Of a stretch of 64,000 bases of DNA, positions 11,746 to 43,421 are shown piece after piece. The notes under the pieces are model-generated. The model was not told the DNA's origin. It was given only the letters and a program-made list of their open reading frames with translations, and made no database searches. The stretch lies in the sequence record NC_041884.1. One strand, written 5' to 3'. The translations under genes were made by a program, and so were the position numbers. How positions within the stretch are numbered: position 1 is the stretch's first letter; each line of letters starts with the position of its first letter.

Positions 11746-11964
11746 TTACCCTAATACAATTATTTTAGTTAATCCTTCTTCATCTGGAATTTCTTTTATA
11801 GTTAAAATAGAACTAGACTTAGAAGGAAAGTCATCTTTATAAAAACCAATACCTAATTGAGATATTGGTTCTACTGTATCACTTTCAGTAACAAAACATA
11901 CTTCTGCTTGAGGAGTATGCTTTTTAATTTTATTTAATTGACGAATTAAATCACTTACATTCAT
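11746..11964 (-). CDS. small hypothetical protein
   Basis: MNVSDLIRQL N-terminus, coupled to the ThiF gene. Confidence 0.55.
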   Translation of the reverse strand: MNVSDLIRQLNKIKKHTPQAEVCFVTESDTVEPISQLGIGFYKDDFPSKSSSILTIKEIPDEEGLTKIIVLG

Positions 11965-13016
11965 TACTTAACCAAGTTACTAATATGAGCAGCTTTACTT
12001 AATTCAAATAATTTCTGATGACTTTCACAGATATCATCAGGGAACTCACTACGAGATAAATCCCCAGCGAATAATACAGAAGCATGAGTTGGAAGTTCCT
12101 TCTCAATACTAACATTAATACCACAAGTAAATTTAATTTTACGATGAGTAATACAGTCAGCAATAGAAGTTTGATATAAGTTAGCTAAAATAGAAGCTGC
12201 CATATCATTACCATTAAACATTTGTTCTGGATTGTCAGCAGTACCTTCTGCATCAGCATCAGCACAAGAATGTACTTTTACTTCTTCCACATCATCAATA
12301 AACGATGGGTGATCCAAGGTATATAAATTTGTAAACACTGGATAAGATACATAACATTGACCGTTAAATAAGTTGATTCCTGCATTGAAATAAATCAAAC
12401 AAGTTTTCTTATAAATAACATAATCAATTTTACGTTTAAATACTTCATTATCTACAAGATTTACAATGATATCAGAAGATTGAATATAGTCATCAATATT
12501 AAAGAAAACATCCTGATCAAGAGGTTGCTCTAACTTAGATACTTTTTGATCATACTCTACAGAAGTACCATATAAAGGAATAGATACTACAGAGATACGA
12601 GGATAAAGATTATTATAACGTTCAGCAAGTACGTCAGATTTTTTCTGACCTACATCTTCATTAATGAAGTTTTGACGAATAATGTTTTTAGTTTCAACCT
12701 CATCATGATCCATGATAACAATTTCAAGATCATAAGCTTGTTCAGGACATTTAGTAAAAGCATCGTTATAAATCTTTAAAAGCTTAGGTAAGAACCAACT
12801 AGCAGTTCCTCCAGCTCCGAACATAACGACACGTGATTTACGATTTAATACATCCTTTAAAAGGTTTTTAGATACAGCTGAACGTAATTGAATCATTTCA
12901 ACAAAACCAACTGAAGCTGTTGCATCAGCTTGTAATTTGGTTTCGTCTTCATAACGATATTTAGTACGAATATCTAAGCTGTCATACCAGTTAAGAACAT
13001 TTTGATTGATTGACAT
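11964..13016 (-). CDS. ThiF/E1-family adenylating enzyme of a ubiquitin-like system
   Basis: GAGGTAS nucleotide-binding loop, DHDEVETKNIIRQNF, VHSCAD candidate catalytic Cys; start MSINQ at 13016 (track start 13046). Confidence 0.88.
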   Translation of the reverse strand: MSINQNVLNWYDSLDIRTKYRYEDETKLQADATASVGFVEMIQLRSAVSKNLLKDVLNRKSRVVMFGAGGTASWFLPKLLKIYNDAFTKCPEQAYDLEIVIMDHDEVETKNIIRQNFINEDVGQKKSDVLAERYNNLYPRISVVSIPLYGTSVEYDQKVSKLEQPLDQDVFFNIDDYIQSSDIIVNLVDNEVFKRKIDYVIYKKTCLIYFNAGINLFNGQCYVSYPVFTNLYTLDHPSFIDDVEEVKVHSCADADAEGTADNPEQMFNGNDMAASILANLYQTSIADCITHRKIKFTCGINVSIEKELPTHASVLFAGDLSRSEFPDDICESHQKLFELSKAAHISNLVK

Positions 13017-16000
13017 TTGTTGTCTCGATAGTTGTATTGTCTTCACTTAATTTGACAATAGTTTTTGCAAATTCATCAGCGACTAGACGTTCTAGTTTTT
13101 CTGATAACTCATACATTTCTGGAACTTCTGCTCCTGACTCGTCTGCATATTTAATTACACAAGCAATAGCTTTGTCTACAAACTCAAGAGCAAGAGATTC
13201 TGAATACTTAACACCATAACGTACTTTATTGATTAAACCATAAATATCGTTAAATGGATTTTTTACTGAATAAAAGTTCGAAGAGTTGCTAGTAGTTGTT
13301 TTAGCTTTATTATTGGGATGTACCTTCCAGCCTTGAGCACTATAGTAGTCCTCATAATCACCTTCAGTCCAACCTGCATACCCACCAGTAGTTCCTGTTT
13401 TACCTGCACCATACATACCTGTGTACATAGGAGCAAACTCAGTGATATTAGCATAATCACTTTCTGGAACAGTGTAATCACTAGTAGCTGTAACACCTAG
13501 TTCATTTGAAAAAATATCTTCGATCTTAAGTTTAATTTCTTTACCATTAGATGCTGCCCGTACAACCATTTCAGGGAGTTCATTGTCAATTTTACCAATT
13601 ACCCCAAAGTAACGAGTTGCCGTTTCATCTTTAAGATCCATTATCTTTTAAGTAGTTCGTTAGACTACTTAGAGTAATCATTAATATTAACCTTATTATA
13701 ATAAATTTCAGTATAACCTCCAAAAATATTACCATTAAAATCTACTGATTTGTTAGATTTTTTAATATTTTGTTCGATTAAAAATAAATCAGGCAATAAT
13801 CCGTTCAATAGTATCTCTTAAGTTTATTTCAACATCAGGATAAAATTTTCTCATTTCTTGTCTTAATTTATATAATCGTCTTTTTGGATTAATACTTAAA
13901 CCATATTTATAATAAATACTATTATTAATTTTTATTTCAAATTCGTATAAAAAGATAGTTTCTAAAGGTCTACGTTGAACTGTAGTTTTATTTAAAAATC
14001 CACTTTGGTTATTTCTAGAGCATGTAGGACAATTACTTCTAGATTGTAAATAGTCATTAGTGCGTGGTGTCCATGTGTTAGAACATTTTTTGCATTCTAA
14101 TTTTATAAATTTAGCATACTCTTGATAACTTCTAGTTAATAAAATGTATAAATCATCTTGGATAACTTTAGAAAGAATTGTAGAATATTTTAATAAATTA
14201 TAAAAATTAGATTTTTGAACTAATGCGTACATGAACTAACTCCCTTAACAAAATCATGAAATAAGGGAAAATAAATATTACCACATGTCTTATGAACTAG
14301 AGCTAATGATATTTTAGTAGTAATTTTAGATAAATCTTGATAGATATATTCATACTCTGAAAAAGTTGTATCAATATAAAGTTTTAAATCCTTTTCTGAT
14401 TTAAAACGTCTTGATTTTTCATTACAAACGCCTGACGTAAGTTTACAATCATTACAGAATTTAGGCTTATTATAAATCAAATTAAACCAATTACTTATAA
14501 CTTCTTTTTGACAAGTATTACAAATTACTAGTATTTTAGATTTGACATTTTTATAAGGTTCTACTTCTCTAATAAATGAAAAACAATTTTCACTTTGAAT
14601 AATCATTTTATATTTTTGAATTTGAAACAAATCTACTCCTCTATATTTCTATAGATGTTGAGACTATATCTTCATCCTATTAAATAGGAGTTTTATGTTT
14701 CCCTTTAATCCGTTCGGAACCACTTGGCGGTAGACCTAAATTTAATTTAGGAATTACTAGTCGTTGAACCTTCCTCTATATTACTAGAGGCTTGGCTGCT
14801 GATTGTCCATTACAAAGAATATATTAATATATTCATCTTCTTTATTTTCAAACATTCACGCTCATCTTTACAGATCACGTTGTAGTTAAAGAAGCTTTAG
14901 GAGTTTCCAGCAATTAATAAAATTTTGTCGACTACATTACTGTAGAAGGTGTCAATCTATTATTTAACACTACTGAAGAAAGCGCTCATATTGACGTGTG
15001 ACACCGTCATAATTGTTAACAAGAGTTTCTTTAATTATCTCTTTTCATTTCCTATCTAAAGTTTGGAAATAGTTCAGACTATCTAATCACCTTCAACAAC
15101 AAATATTTGCTTTGTTAAGGTGTTGGGCGCTCGTGGAGAGGTTATTGTTATCTTACTCACTCTCTAGTCGTTTAACGTTCTTGTCTCTTAATTAAGATAA
15201 GACAAGCTTCGCACAGTGTCGCCTACTAAGCTTCCACTGTTAGCTACAATATATAAATATAATAATGATACAGACTATTGGAATCTAACCAATTCATCCT
15301 AAGTTTACAAAGATGTTTCCCAACATTCTAAGCTCTTGGGGCGTTCACCTTTCACCAAGTCTGCATTACGAATTATCTCGGATTGGTAGGCCTTATGGGA
15401 TTCTAACCCATGATCTCACAAGTTATGAGCTTGGTGCTTTAGAACGCTAAGCTAAAGGCCTGTAATACCGAAAGAATTGGCATCGCCTGGAGGAATCGAA
15501 CCTCTCACGTCCTTCCTGCTTTTTACGTACCAGCTTAGAAGGCTGGTGCAGGGGCAAGCGACACAGATGATTAATTTCATTTTGTAAATTTATATAAGTA
15601 ACACCCTCTTTTGATCGAGGTTCACCCAATTATTCGATTACCATTTCTGATAAAAGCCACTCACATTTAATGGATATCCATAACTACAACTAAATCTGGA
15701 CTTGAATAAATCTCAGGAGTATTAGTATAGTTAATGGTTGCTGCGCTTACTTCTTGTTTAGGTACATGAATGAAGAAATCTTTTTTAATTTTATCCCAAA
15801 CAATAGCACAATAGACTTCAGATTTAATTGTCTTACTAATATTACGATAAAGAACAATTACTTGTTGTAATAATCCAGTAGGAATTTTTGGAATTTCAGA
15901 ATGATCAGGAGTAAAAGAAGTTTCACATTCTTTTGTCAAACCTAAAGCTTTGAAATCTTTTAATTCAGTAGGGATTACAAATGTACCAATAGGAGACTTA

Positions 16001-16101
16001 CGTTGCTGAAAAATACCATTAGCAAAGATTGCATTATGGATATTCTTACCTGATTCTGTATCAAATTTTTCAACAGCAAAAGAGTTAAATAAATCAAACA
16101 T
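12991..16101 (-). CDS. JAB/MPN+ metalloprotease, spliced: join(16101..15670, 15001..14966, 13638..12991), 371 aa
   Basis: joining the exons restores VMDIH|SHVNMSAFFSSV|DLKDETATRYFGVIG, the HxH...SxxD JAB motif; both junctions have a P1 U-G pair and a terminal G. Confidence 0.92.
13665..14232 (-). CDS. intron-encoded GIY-YIG/T5orf172-like endonuclease; the C-terminus lies in the +1 frame after CGG at 13801-13803
   Basis: CKKC..CPTC zinc ribbon, LYEF...YKYGLS...RRL; the +1 frame adds 45 aa ending FGGYTEIYY...; own SD AAGGGAG. Confidence 0.7.
14220..14630 (-). CDS. intron-encoded zinc-ribbon protein (endonuclease-associated part)
   Basis: CNTC...CNDC and HKTC...SCTH motifs; GAGGAG SD upstream of a TTG start. 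Confidence 0.65.
   Translation of the reverse strand: MFQIQKYKMIIQSENCFSFIREVEPYKNVKSKILVICNTCQKEVISNWFNLIYNKPKFCNDCKLTSGVCNEKSRRFKSEKDLKLYIDTTFSEYEYIYQDLSKITTKISLALVHKTCGNIYFPLFHDFVKGVSSCTH
15269..15364 (-). tRNA. tRNA-Leu(UAG)-like RNA with irregular anticodon stem, inside intron 1
   Basis: GCAGACT/AGTCTGT acceptor + A73, GG in the D-loop, CTTAGAA loop, long variable arm, ATTGG/CCAAT T-stem; CCA not encoded. Confidence 0.55.
15384..15461 (-). tRNA. tRNA with CAU anticodon (Ile2 or elongator Met) inside intron 1
   Basis: AGGCCTT/AAGGCCT acceptor, A73-CCA, CTCATAA loop, ATGGG/CCCAT T-stem; C4-G69 suggests Ile2. Confidence 0.88.
15478..15562 (-). tRNA. atypical tRNA-Arg(UCU)-like RNA inside intron 1
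   Basis: acceptor GTCGCTT/AGGCGAT + G + CCA, anticodon arm CCAGC-CTTCTAA-GCTGG, TTCGATT T-loop, no normal D-arm. Confidence 0.65.
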
Positions 16102-16985
16102 TAGAAGTGTCTCCCAATATTAATAGCACCATCGCCACCATTAGGTTCAAAAATATCATCAAATTTGTAACCTAATACTGAACAGAAATAGTAAAGAGTA
16201 AAGATATTATGATACCAATCATGTTCACGCTCTGTAATAGAACGAATAAAGTAATTGATTGAATCTTCACTTTCTGCTAATACTTCTGTTAAAAATTCTT
16301 TAAAACCTTCACGATTTGAATTAACAAAAGAAGTTTTAACTTGATTACGAATACGTAAATCAGAGTTAAAATTAGAATTTAAGTAAGCATGAATAGTAGA
16401 TACTTGTTTATAACTATCTTTTGCTTTTAATAAATCACGATCAAAACTTCCATGCCAACAAACATTGTGATCAAAGTGATTACACAACATAGAAAGAAGT
16501 TGAGAATCATTACTTGGCATATTAATAATGTTAGTAGTAATAATTCCGTAGTTATGAGTTACATTACTAAATTCTGAATTATTTGTATTAACGATTAAGG
16601 CGCCATAATTTTTTAATTTAAAATTAGGGAAACGTACAAAATGATTTTCATCGCCATCTTCATCTTCTTCAGTAATATGGCAGATTCCGTATTTATTGCC
16701 TTCTTTGATATTTACACTACCACCAAATTGGAAAGTACCTGTAAAGGTTACTTCAGGAATCATGTATAAACGTTTTACTTGTCCATTCGCTACACATTCA
16801 CGAATTAAATAAGGACTAATAAAACCAGTATCAGCTTCTTTTAAACCATTAACAGAAGCTTTAGTAAAGAGTTCAGGAACAGATGCTACAGGAACACGTT
16901 TAATAACAGATTGACGTCGATCATTAGTTACACTAACCCGTGCATGTGGTTGTGAACTGTCTAACGTTACATTAATAATAGTCAT
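16101..16985 (-). CDS. prokaryotic E2-like protein (PRTRC protein B / Prok-E2 type)
   Basis: LCNHFDHNVCWHG resembles the P.N....ICWG motif; lies between the Ubl and JAB genes. Confidence 0.6.
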   Translation of the reverse strand: MTIINVTLDSSQPHARVSVTNDRRQSVIKRVPVASVPELFTKASVNGLKEADTGFISPYLIRECVANGQVKRLYMIPEVTFTGTFQFGGSVNIKEGNKYGICHITEEDEDGDENHFVRFPNFKLKNYGALIVNTNNSEFSNVTHNYGIITTNIINMPSNDSQLLSMLCNHFDHNVCWHGSFDRDLLKAKDSYKQVSTIHAYLNSNFNSDLRIRNQVKTSFVNSNREGFKEFLTEVLAESEDSINYFIRSITEREHDWYHNIFTLYYFCSVLGYKFDDIFEPNGGDGAINIGRHF

Positions 16986-17717
16986 AGATATTTCGATTTA
17001 ATTGTAGGAGTAGAACTTAAGACCATAGTGAATTTACTGATGTAAGCATCCATCATTGATGTATCAGGAGCTTGTCGTCTAGTACGAGAAGATGGAAAAC
17101 GATCAACAATATTTCGAATAGTTCGTTCATCAACATCTGCATATCCATTAAGAATGCTTTCAACAAATTCAGGAATATTTAAATCTGGTCTACGTAATAA
17201 GGAGAGAACGTCAGTAGGAAGTTCTTGTGGGACTGTCCCATCAACTTCATTAGGAAACGTTTCAAATAAGGCTTCATTAATTAACAATTGTATGTACCTC
17301 ACGTCTGCTGAAGTAATCATTTTCTCTTACAATACGACTTAAACGTTCTAGAGAATTTCCACGTCTTAATGATACAGGAACACGAGAATCAGAGATGTCT
17401 TTAGTAAGAAGATCTTTAATAACATTAAGTGTCATTGTTAAATGAGATTTCACTGTCAGTTTATTAGGAGGAGAACAATCATACAGATCTTTCATCACGC
17501 TATAAATAAAAGGACTATATGATAGATACATATACATAGTAGCTACAGTATCAATATCAGAATAAGGGATATCAAAAGCAGCTAAGGTTTCTTGAAGGGG
17601 ATTTTCACTAGTTCTATGTGTATTTAAATGATGTTCAAAAGTAGAAGCTTGTCTACTATTAAAACGAGTAAATATTGTAGCTAGTAAATATTTTTCAAAC
17701 GATTTATCAATAATCAT
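16982..17717 (-). CDS. two hypothetical proteins inside the ubiquitin-like operon (16982-17320 and 17277-17717)
   Basis: coupled ORFs; no motif recognised. Confidence 0.6.
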
Positions 17718-17758
17718 TTTATGTATAACCAGAGAGAAGAAAAAACAAAATAGAAAAA

Positions 17759-17787
17759 GGAATATATACTAATTTAGTATATATTCC
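17759..17787 (-). terminator. intrinsic terminator after the Ubl gene
   Basis: 13-bp perfect stem GGAATATATACTA/TAGTATATATTCC followed by a U-rich tract on the minus strand. Confidence 0.75.
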
Positions 17788-17811
17788 TTAAATACTTAAA
17801 CCTTAATAGGC

Positions 17812-18009
17812 TTACGCAGCTTTGTTACCATCTTTCAATTGGAAAGTAACTTCATCACCAGTCACAACAACTTCAGCTTTATCAAGCTCGTTGTACATTT
17901 GACGGAAGATCGCTAAGATCTCTTGTGGAGTTTTGTTTGGAACAGGTTGACGAGTGATACCAGCAGAAGCGTAAGTTACATAATAAGTAGTTGAAGTAGT
18001 CATGGACAT
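17812..18009 (-). CDS. ubiquitin-like (beta-grasp) protein, PRTRC protein C type
   Basis: 65 aa, TPQEIL...MYNELDKA...VTFQ...GNKAA resembles TPEQV...YPEL..A...F...GTKG; strong codon bias. Confidence 0.75.
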   Translation of the reverse strand: MSMTTSTTYYVTYASAGITRQPVPNKTPQEILAIFRQMYNELDKAEVVVTGDEVTFQLKDGNKAA

Positions 18010-23726: not shown

Positions 23727-23819
23727 TGGCGGAAAAGGAGGAAGTCGAATCCTCAAGGCACTTATTCAGTACTCGACGCATTTCAAGTGCGCTGCCATCG
23801 CCAGTTGGCTTGCTTTTCC
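23727..23819 (-). tRNA. tRNA-Ser(UGA)
   Basis: GGAAAAG/CTTTTCC acceptor, G73-CCA, GCGCA-CTTGAAA-TGCGT, long variable arm, TTCGACT T-loop. Confidence 0.92.
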
Positions 23820-36994: not shown

Positions 36995-37066
36995 TTGAGA
37001 AAATCAGATTCGAACTGATCACGGCCAGAAATTATTCTAGTGCTCTACCAACTGAGCTATTTCACA
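36995..37066 (-). tRNA. pseudo-tRNA with a collapsed anticodon loop
   Basis: TAGCTCAGTTGGTAGAGC D-arm, ATCAG-TTCGAAT-CTGAT T-arm, anticodon arm CTAGA-ATAATT-TCTGG, no CCA. Confidence 0.7.
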
Positions 37067-39220: not shown

Positions 39221-40880
39221 TATAAAATTACATTTACTGTTGGTTCTTTCGACAACACTTTTCGGATTTTATATGAAGATCGTATCAAAGGTTCTAGCTT
39301 CGATCCTCTGTTGTCATGCACCTCTAAACATTTGTGTGGTAACCCACTCACTGAACCTTATCAGCTTGAACTCAATGTGCCACCCAGAGATTACTCTGAC
39401 CTCATTTATGTTGTAAATGTAATTTTATATTTAAATAATAAGAGCCAAGTCTTCACAAGAGGATGGATTCGAACCACCGACAACAGTAGGGATTTTACTG
39501 CCTACAATACTCTACCGACTGAGCTACTCTGCAATTTCCACTCTCTTATTATTTAGATGGTAAGAATATAAGTTAGTGTTAAGACGTTGATACATTAGGT
39601 ATTACCCTAACGCCAAGAGTTGAACTTGTTAAAAACCTTCTGTAACCCAACAACTATCTTTATTACTGGACAGTAATCATCTGAGATTATTAACCTATAC
39701 CGTATTCTTACCTCTAAATAATAATTAAAAGACATCTAATAACCTAACTTCAGATAAGGGTACTTACTCGATTATCATGAGACTCTACTAAATGTCTTTT
39801 AATTATTATTTAAAAGGTGTGAGGTACAACTCTCACAATGAACCATGTAGCCATTTTGGTTAGCGTCAAGCTGTATACAGCTTAGTTTCTCTAGTCAGCC
39901 CGCTTTAGGTTGTCCCTAATTGTGTGATATCAACACTACCATTTTTCTATCTTACGATAACACCAATGATCAAGTGCTTGTGGTACTAGAAGTCATTAAG
40001 GTGAATATGCCTTTATAGATCATACCAAATCTACAGGCCCATCACTCCCTTCAAATTTTATTACGCCACATCCTGTTTGGACTTACACCGTGTTGGATGT
40101 TATTTATCGGTAGAATTTGAGCCATTAACCAGAGCGCATTTATTAACTTATACTTTCATATAAGATTAGACCTTTTAGAGTGTCCTGATTTCTCAAGCTG
40201 AACTCTATTACCATCTCATATAAGTTGTCAGACTTATACTAACTACTTTTAGAATTACTCCTAATTTCGAGTGTCTCTACTATACAAAGGATAAATCCTT
40301 CTTAGCTATTATAACCATATGAAATAGAACCTCACTTAGAATTATAATATTTAGGTAATTGAGGAAAAACATGAGAATATAAAAGCATACTGCCATAATA
40401 TACGAGCCGTTAAGCCATCAGAATCGAACTGAGTCCTCTTTTATACCTCGATGCCCTTCATTATCGAAAAAGGGCTTTGGCACAATTGTGTTGTGCATCT
40501 CGTATCACTTGAGGTAATAACTCTTGGAATCTAGCAGAGGAGCGACCTCTCTTATTTTATATACCGATTGGATTCTTGTCTCGGTTTGTGGGTCTATTAC
40601 ATGTCATCGTTTCTCAGTTGACAGTGAGGGATCTACAAAAATTGGAATAGACTGACAATGGAGGTAATCATTAATCCCCTATTACAGAGATTAATCCTAT
40701 AGAATGCCTAAGAATTTCAGTTGCAATCTTACATTCAAAAGGACTTATATCAATTAGTATATTGGACAATATGTTCTGGAGACGGATTAGGCGTCTCACT
40801 CTTTTACTAAAAATTAGTAAACGCTTTTAGCCTCGGATTAAGAGACATTCCACTACATTTTAAGCTACAGACCTCAATAC
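39221..40880 (-). ncRNA. 1.7-kb non-coding cluster of stem-closed structured RNAs
   Basis: no credible ORF; abutting inverted repeats 39221/39429, 39432/39555, 39552/39718, 39715/39812; several T-loop-like hairpins. Confidence 0.7.
39454..39533 (-). tRNA. pseudo-tRNA with an expanded or alternative anticodon arm
   Basis: TAGCTCAGTCGGTAGAGT D-arm, GGTGG-TTCGAAT-CCATC T-arm, GTAGG-CAGTAAAATC-CCTAC (10-nt loop), bulged acceptor, no CCA. Confidence 0.65.
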
Positions 40881-43347: not shown

Positions 43348-43421
43348 TGGTCCAAAATCTGAGATTCGAACTCAGACGCAGGGTTTTAGGGACCCCTGTG
43401 CTACCATTACACCAATTCTGG
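43348..43421 (-). tRNA. tRNA with CUA anticodon (amber-suppressor type), C at position 33
   Basis: CCAGAAT/ATTTTGG + A + CCA; GGGGT-CCCTAAA-ACCCT anticodon arm; CTGAG-TTCGAAT-CTCAG. Confidence 0.8.

Follow-up and report, generated by a model that had tools for sequence, protein, structure and literature searches.

A predicted group I intron in the JAB gene of Acinetobacter phage ME3 carries three tRNA-type genes in a peripheral hairpin

The cargo known from group I introns of phages and bacteria consists of homing endonuclease genes or, in the case of IStrons, of transposases (PMC3984707, PMC4227781, PMC11878797). Can such an intron also hold a set of transfer RNA (tRNA) genes? This question was raised by the 234.9-kb jumbo phage vB_AbaM_ME3 of Acinetobacter (KU935715), of which genome bases 124001-188000 were analysed (the window, 64,000 nucleotides (nt) long). 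An original prediction, made from the DNA letters, held that a gene for a JAB deconjugase is interrupted in its HxH motif by a group I intron (intron 1), a stem of which encloses three tRNA genes. At this locus, the GenBank record lists ME3_135 ('PRTRC system protein A', 144 amino acids), one tRNA-Met and the hypothetical ME3_134 to ME3_131; it treats the split JAB gene as unrelated open reading frames (ORFs) and has no intron annotation, and the genome announcement counted four tRNAs and did not mention introns (PMC5000817). All 34 of the 34 long ORFs of the window lie on the minus strand. The comparisons presented here indicate that intron 1 is a member of an intron family targeting a site in the JAMM motif, and that in ME3 it gained a cargo of ~330 nt: three tRNA-type genes, all in one orientation, housed by the terminal loop of a hairpin that we call P3.2. 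The coordinates are collected in Table 1.

Uninterrupted full-length homologues of 357-371 amino acids were retrieved with the exon 3 piece alone as query. In one of them, P0004, the three ME3 pieces are joined with zero residues gained or lost (...VVVMDIH-SHVNMSAFFSSV-DLKDETATRYFGVIGK...). Its DNA, an intronless allele on the metagenome contig L132, runs from ATGGATATCCAT directly into TCACACGTAAAT... and, further on, from ...AGTTCAGTA directly into GATTTAAAAGAT. The first junction reads ATCCAT followed by TCACAC, exactly as predicted for the ligated exons of ME3, which bears out the spliced junction (CAT joined to TCACAC) that had been proposed; the second reads ..GTA followed by GAT. In ME3, exon 1 ends in ...GTT ATG GAT ATC CAT and intron 1 begins with UAAAUGUGAGUGGC. 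Precise removal of the introns restores the reading frame, the predicted ligated exons matching L132 and P0004. Intron 1 lies between the His codon and the Ser-His codons of the JAMM motif (E..HxH..S..D), and intron 2 just ahead of the Asp codon in SxxD. On another metagenome contig, L130, the final 39 nt of intron 1 are the same as in ME3 and lead into exon 2, which is fused straight to exon 3, indicating that intron 2 is optional.

The residues E95, H144, H146, S154 and D157 were invariant in seven of the seven full-length homologues, two of which matched PF14464, so that the ME3 product likely adopts a JAMM fold. The NCBIfam PRTRC_A profile was matched from position 73 to 141 by ME3 exon 1 and from 142 to 190 by the downstream piece of the contig L003. 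When the ME3 pieces were searched separately, they scored 16.8 bits against a TIGR03735 cut-off of 101.8, which is below what membership of this equivalog takes. Among isolated phages, the sole tblastn match of exon 1 was ME3. Compared with L132, exon 1 differs by synonymous changes in 38 codons and by non-synonymous ones in 2, exon 2 in 5 and 0, respectively, and the exons contain no stops. These counts, taken against the intronless allele, indicate purifying selection on the exons.

The group I intron itself, with its coordinates and anatomy, was supported by its guide, its terminal G, an Rfam core match, folding and homologues at the same site. In P1, the 5' exon CCAU pairs with the guide GUGG, with a U.G pair at the splice site; in L135 and L139, whose exon ends in GCAU, the guide is GUGC. 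The last base of the intron is G15002, P10 is formed by UGUGA:UCACA, and a junction of G followed by UCACA(C/U) is common to L003, L130, L131, L133 and L135. In L131, the 3' end of intron 1 is variant and P9 is fully compensated. The core downstream of the cassette (15052-15271) matched the Rfam group I model RF00028 with 29.2 bits (E = 2.3e-5 in an 861-nt search). An unconstrained fold of all 668 nt recovered P2, P3 (with strands ~500 nt apart), the CCUC/GAGG hairpin and the AT-rich closing stem, as well as three cloverleaf-like domains, P4-P6, P7.1 and P8; the pair probabilities were 0.65-1.0 for the helices checked (P7.1 left out). The closing stem of the cassette comprises 14 base pairs (bp) and encloses a loop of 329 nt. 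The core helices, guide, terminal G and J-region sequences of intron 1 are intact. With purifying selection on the exons and an intact guide, terminal G and core, the ME3 JAB gene is probably still expressed, and hence spliced.

Two other placements were considered and rejected. Rfam's own placement of P1-P3 forced P1 and P2 onto the AT-rich stem, with mismatches marked. An alternative P3 using the second GGGUG (15604-15600) had only 5 bp, clashed with P3.1 and was unsupported by the covariation in L133 and L140.

A homologous intron occupies the identical JAB site in seven other contig families (L003/L004, L133/L134, L135-L137, L138, L139, L140 and the 229-kb IMG/VR phage L143), which were reached via proteins stopping at ...DIH. 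Their Rfam group I scores, which cover neither L138 nor L143, were 62 bits for L133, 47.5 for L003, 45.7 for L140 and 44.9 for L135 (four uncut matches), and 26.2 for L139, of which the match is cut by the contig end. The common order is P1, P2, P3, 'AA', hairpin A, 'GU', hairpin B, 'UAAC', P4-P6, P7, P7.1, P3', P8, P7', P9, and compensatory changes were seen across the relatives in P1, P2, P3, P3.1, P3.2, P4, P6, P7.1 and P8. In the seven relatives, P3.2 has 5-10 bp and a small loop, and the starts of its strands are 11-13 nt apart (six measured), versus 355 nt in ME3. The ME3 hairpin retains the outer G-C and U.G pairs of its relatives and gains a 9-bp AT stem, the outer 5 bp of its closing stem being homologous to the relatives' P3.2. 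Without its cassette, ME3 intron 1 shares 80% identity with that of L135, which has no ORF. The search for related introns with and without cargo that had been suggested yielded seven same-site introns, and no tRNA was found in or near the intron in any of them. These cassette-free introns, the covarying helices and the folding all agree with the proposal that P3 is followed by two extra hairpins, the second of which holds the cassette. In L003, L133 and L143, an antisense LAGLIDADG ORF is present in the P9 region.

Most matches of a 16-mer scan of metagenomes were unrelated to the intron; a blastn and Rfam screen kept 10 canonical group I relatives from nine loci. These pass from UUGGGUG directly to AAUU and P4, which identifies UUGGGUG as the P3 strand and the two hairpins as an insertion in J3/4. 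Scans of IMG/VR for further copies of the cassette, or of its third element, found only ME3 itself.

Table 1. Features of the JAB locus and of the element 1 family (window coordinates unless a contig is named).
Feature	Position	Strand	Support
JAB exon 1 (ME3_135, 144 codons, end ..VVVMDIH)	15670..16101	-	ORF list; 99% identity to residues 1-144 of intronless P0004; NCBIfam PRTRC_A positions 73-141
Predicted group I intron 1, 668 nt, nested cassette	15002..15669	-	P1/P10 guide, terminal G, partial Rfam match, same-site homologues, empty site in L132
Internal guide sequence, UGUGA (P10 part) and GUGG (P1 part)	15657..15665	-	pairs with 3' exon UCACA (15001-14997) and 5' exon CCAU (15673-15670)
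P2 hairpin (UUAUC/GGUAA)	15638..15653	-	sequence differs, fully compensated, in each of 5 relatives
P3 5' strand UUGGGUG	15623..15629	-	pairs with CGCCCAA 15123-15129, probability 0.65-1.0; UGCGGUG/CGCCGCA in L133
Extra hairpin 1, 'P3.1' (CCUC/GAGG)	15605..15620	-	present, with compensatory changes, in all same-site introns
Extra hairpin 2, 'P3.2', closing stem 5' strand (GUUAC-U-UAUAUAAAU)	15588..15602	-	pairs with 15243-15258, probability 0.72-0.87
tRNA-like gene 1, UCU anticodon loop, no D arm, encoded CCA	15478..15562	-	covarying phage family; Rfam tRNA-Sec 30 bits, cut-off 47
tRNA gene 2, anticodon CAU, encoded CCA	15384..15461	-	ARAGORN Met(cat); Rfam RF00005 59.9 bits; GenBank tRNA-Met
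tRNA-like gene 3, Leu(UAG)-like, long variable arm	15269..15364	-	ARAGORN Leu(tag) 15267-15365; cloverleaf in minimum free energy (MFE) fold
'P3.2' closing stem 3' strand (AUUUAUAUA-UU-GUAGC)	15243..15258	-	folding, comparison with relatives
P4-P5-P6 domain	15180..15239	-	Rfam alignment, covariation, pair probability 0.80-0.99
Core 3' part: P7 (GACUA 15165-15169 / UAGUC 15077-15081), P7.1, P3 3' strand (15123-15129), P8, P9	15046..15169	-	Rfam alignment, covariation; P9 compensated in L131
Exon 2, 36 nt, SHVNMSAFFSSV	14966..15001	-	identical peptide, contiguous in P0004 and P0002
Predicted group I intron 2, 1327 nt, endonuclease-like ORFs ME3_134/133/132	13639..14965	-	Rfam 81 bits at 14639-14975; absent in L130 and L132; ORF family matches
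Exon 3 (ME3_131, DLKDETATRYFGVIGK...)	12991..13638	-	alignment to intronless homologues and L003
Element 1 copies	window 15478-15562; L002:3001-3078; L126:1501-1598; L127:1501-1578; L128:1501-1557; L129:1501-1580		

How far the three elements of the cargo are tRNA genes differs from one to the next. Element 2 is canonical and passes RF00005 (cut-off 29 bits) with E = 1.9e-10. Its A1-U72 is paired and its anticodon stem lacks the three G-C pairs, and it is thus not initiator-like. It would be a Met tRNA, or an Ile tRNA if C34 is modified, a choice that sequence alone cannot decide. Element 1 was matched neither by ARAGORN nor by RF00005. In element 3, the acceptor, D, long variable and T arms fold and the sequence CUUAGAA is present; Rfam was silent at E<=10, and no homologue was obtained by blastn or in IMG/VR. 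From these properties, elements 1 and 3 are best described as non-canonical, tRNA-like RNAs. The prediction of three tRNA genes is thereby upheld for the CAU element and qualified for the UCU and Leu(UAG)-like ones. The codons read would be AGA for element 1, AUG or AUA for element 2 and CUA for element 3. Within the ORFs of the window, the share of AGA among Arg codons is 40%, that of ATA among Ile codons 16% and that of CTA among Leu codons 11%, which is consistent with, not proof of, a role in codon supply.

Other tRNA genes of the window lie at 43348-43421, 36995-37066, 39454-39532 and 23727-23819; one of them has the anticodon CUA (amber-suppressor-like, 'Pyl' for ARAGORN) and one an aberrant anticodon loop. 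An ME3-related contig encodes a Thg1-family protein, tRNA-His guanylyltransferase-like (L003:17331-18116), a hint of tRNA investment by this phage group.

Element 1 turned out to have homologues in 342 phage records, nearly all of them unannotated. Among the phages that carry it are T4-like Acinetobacter phages, 114-kb Vibrio phages (with the Demerecviridae phage PG07) and Salicola SCTP-2. The acceptor stem of element 1 measures 8 bp, its T stem 4 bp (with the loop UUCGAUU) and its anticodon stem 6 bp, and CCA is encoded; a 5-bp stem X (CCNNC/GNNGG) around the anticodon arm takes the place of the D arm, and the CUUCUAA anticodon loop and the T arm are invariant in the family. In an alignment of six diverse copies, 96% of the cells were paired and 15 of the 27 pairs were changed on both sides, a covariation score that none of 500 shuffles reached and that slid registers did not come close to either. 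Covariation backs the acceptor stem, stem X and the anticodon stem; a fourth short helix, which would form a pseudoknot, was weakly supported. No Rfam family matched element 1. In phage KARL-1, the copy lies immediately 3' of a tRNA-Thr, among other tRNA genes.

How would such an intron work? Expression, splicing, the order of processing and the function of the tRNAs in ME3 are matters that we infer throughout, and to the following reading we attach a probability of about 0.55. The cassette, which is co-oriented with the JAB gene, would be transcribed inside the JAB pre-mRNA. The closing stem and the 7-bp P3 would then bring the two halves of the ribozyme together, the core would fold, and the exons would be ligated by self-splicing. 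Finally, host RNase P and 3'-end processing enzymes would free the three RNAs, either from the precursor or from the excised intron. These RNAs would decode AGA, AUG or AUA, and CUA, codons heavily used by this AT-rich phage. Since two of the three are structurally odd, they may also evade host nucleases that target tRNAs; non-canonical phage tRNAs have been linked to such an escape (PMC10264068, PMC11555353). As the cassette would lie in the JAB pre-mRNA, tRNA processing and splicing would share one transcript, and the competition between the two that had been suggested would be logical. A cut inside the P3.2 loop need not abolish splicing, because the two intron halves can remain paired. It had been proposed that host anticodon nucleases, by cutting the precursor, could switch the deconjugase off. 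We do not favour this, as an anticodon cut would fall in a peripheral loop beyond the 14-bp closing stem, so that the core need not be disabled.

Several points weigh against splicing of a tRNA-bearing precursor as just described. The cassette is known from a single genome, ME3, and could be a recent insertion that impairs splicing, the purifying selection on the exons being older than the cassette. The Rfam score of intron 1 is below the gathering score of 50 bits, the model being unable to span the 360-nt insert. Element 1 is devoid of a D arm, and the anticodon stem of element 3 is irregular, with a G/G mismatch and an 8-nt loop in the MFE fold. Finally, a start site inside the intron is conceivable, as the promoters of ME3 may be unlike those sought in a sigma-70 scan.

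This last point leads to a possible, but clearly less probable, explanation, namely that the intron works and that the tRNAs come mainly from a promoter of their own in the P3.2 loop. The nesting would then offer no more than a safe landing place, and maturation of the tRNAs would be uncoupled from JAB splicing. A scan for sigma-70-like promoters on the minus strand of 15002-15669 found no site, though ME3's own promoter types may differ. The AT-rich stem does hold TATATAAAT, and the leader ACAAAATGAAATT resembles the one ahead of the possible cassette of L132 described below. Yet the leader motif AAAATGAAATT occurs at chance level in the window (13 matches, 14.3 expected) and was rejected as a cassette promoter, and read-through from the JAB promoter would still make the nested precursor. 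We consider it rather unlikely that insertion of the cassette killed the ribozyme, leaving a JAB pseudogene and a tRNA cluster between intron remnants. The modest Rfam score (29 bits) and the uniqueness of the arrangement would fit this, and the JAB system may be dispensable in culture. It is, however, difficult to reconcile with the integrity of the core helices, guide, terminal G and J regions, with the 80% identity to L135, with stop-free exons of which the first shows a synonymous to non-synonymous ratio of 38:2, and with the fact that intron 2 and exon 3 are intact too.

The order of events could also be reversed. If RNase P and other enzymes excised the tRNAs first, the two halves of the ribozyme, each with its exon, would have to rejoin by the 14 bp of P3.2 and the 7 bp of P3 before splicing in trans. 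Organelles offer natural examples of trans-splicing group I introns (PMC2731911, PMC3873408), the break would sit in a peripheral loop under a long stem, and the same dilemma has been discussed for the coral ND5-717 intron (PMC6545197). Against this, cis-splicing ahead of processing is simpler, and an AT-rich stem of 14 bp may fail to hold the halves together at low concentration; we regard this scheme as improbable, slightly more so than a dead ribozyme. A misjoining of the cassette into the intron during assembly of the ME3 genome seems very improbable. It is true that there is only one genome record and that an inverted repeat flanks the insert. But the insert sits exactly in a hairpin loop, the native stem being extended with the first two pairs of the relatives (G-C and U.G) kept, and both flanks are colinear with the intron, which is unexpected for a chimera. 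A broader reading is tentative: the nesting might itself be functional and couple JAB expression and tRNA output via one RNA, either through a two-piece ribozyme left once RNase P has removed the tRNAs or through the rate of tRNA processing or damage setting the level of deconjugase mRNA. We would put this no higher than the explanation by a separate promoter.

Intron 2 carries three ORFs, ME3_134, ME3_133 and ME3_132, with CapR/treble-clef zinc-finger and PHROG endonuclease matches, which are probably the remains of a decayed homing endonuclease; the contigs that lack this intron, L130 and L132, are ME3-like. The JAMM motif region appears to be an intron hot spot. Three Rfam group I matches lie between the exon-1 ORF and the downstream JAB ORF in L135:4426-5981, and other homologues (P0017, P0019 and P0053) end a few codons past HSH, suggesting more insertion sites. 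The translated JAB C-terminal domain of L003:11594-12241 scored ~16 bits against Shiga-toxin A 'exception' models of NCBIfam (cut-off 718), which we took as noise.

The surroundings of the JAB gene are PRTRC-like (window 11964-13046 and 16101-18009), with a ThiF/E1-like gene directly after it (PRTRC_ThiF 56 bits, under the cut-off) and small ORFs upstream that could include a ubiquitin-like partner. The ThiF/E1-like gene is uninterrupted in ME3. Next to the intronless JAB gene of L132, it is interrupted after ...IMDHDEV (L132:3109-3549, also L141), at a site shared with a LAGLIDADG-bearing insertion (L003:12569-13985) and with a truncation after L143:7726. The L132 insertion shows a P1-like pairing with a U.G pair (by eye) and has motifs in common with the same-site intron of L003; it is followed by a canonical tRNA-Arg(UCU) and by the start of a second tRNA, inside which the contig ends, L141 being no longer. 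Rfam found no group I intron in this insertion, even at E<=10. The whole may represent another intron with a tRNA cassette, in which case such cassettes would be a recurring intron cargo in ME3's phage group.

Full-text literature searches brought up no tRNA-carrying intron from a phage or a bacterium. Within the literature searched, the arrangement, which the original prediction did not recognise, is thus new for a group I intron of phages or bacteria; it has precedents in organelles. The phage introns with endonuclease genes (T4 td/nrdB/nrdD, Twort, SPO1-like, Bastillevirinae; PMC3984707, PMC11878797) resemble that of ME3 in that a ribozyme sits in a phage protein gene where a conserved catalytic motif is encoded, and a peripheral loop holds the cargo. 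They differ in that intron 1 of ME3 has no endonuclease gene and its cargo is three tRNA-type genes, which lie in an extra hairpin between P3 and P4. IStrons (PMC4227781) also have a non-endonuclease passenger, but this is a transposase. In the introns of bacterial tRNA genes (cyanobacterial tRNA-Leu, Azoarcus tRNA-Ile; PMC3984707, PMC13168695), ribozyme and tRNA share a transcript as in ME3, yet the topology is the opposite, since there it is the tRNA whose anticodon loop is split by the intron.

The hexacoral mitochondrial ND5-717 group I intron holds 2-16 host genes in P8 (PMC6545197). There too, ordinary genes of the genome sit in a peripheral helix, and their processing is in conflict with splicing. 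In contrast to ME3, that intron is organellar, the location is P8, the named nested genes are the mitochondrial protein genes ND1, ND3 and COI, and the conflict is solved by back-splicing of a permuted transcript (PMC6545197). Putative intron-encoded tRNAs have been annotated in Ophiostoma mitogenomes, in atp6-i1 and cox1-1281 (PMC7902536). Like the ME3 elements, these are tRNA genes within an intron, here organellar; unlike them, they are single genes known from annotation only, without structural placement or comparative proof. Eukaryotic intronic small nucleolar RNAs and tRNAs (PMC10324135, PMC7722341, PMC2943599) likewise have an excised intron as precursor of a stable non-coding RNA, but the introns are spliceosomal.

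These findings allow the JAB gene structure in the ME3 record to be corrected, three supposedly unrelated ORFs being one gene, and they bring to light a tRNA-like RNA without a D arm that is widespread, with more than 340 phage genomes containing it, yet had been overlooked and left unannotated. In the ME3 intron, one transcript would be the substrate of both a ribozyme and RNase P with the tRNA maturation enzymes, and the cassette-free and intronless relatives are ready controls. It could serve as a test bed for how a large structured insert, or the excision of such an insert, affects ribozyme folding, and for split group I introns in bacteria. More generally, the tRNA cassette would show that the peripheral loops of group I introns can host ordinary phage genes, and tRNA cassettes may move between group I introns as a class of cargo alternative to endonuclease genes.

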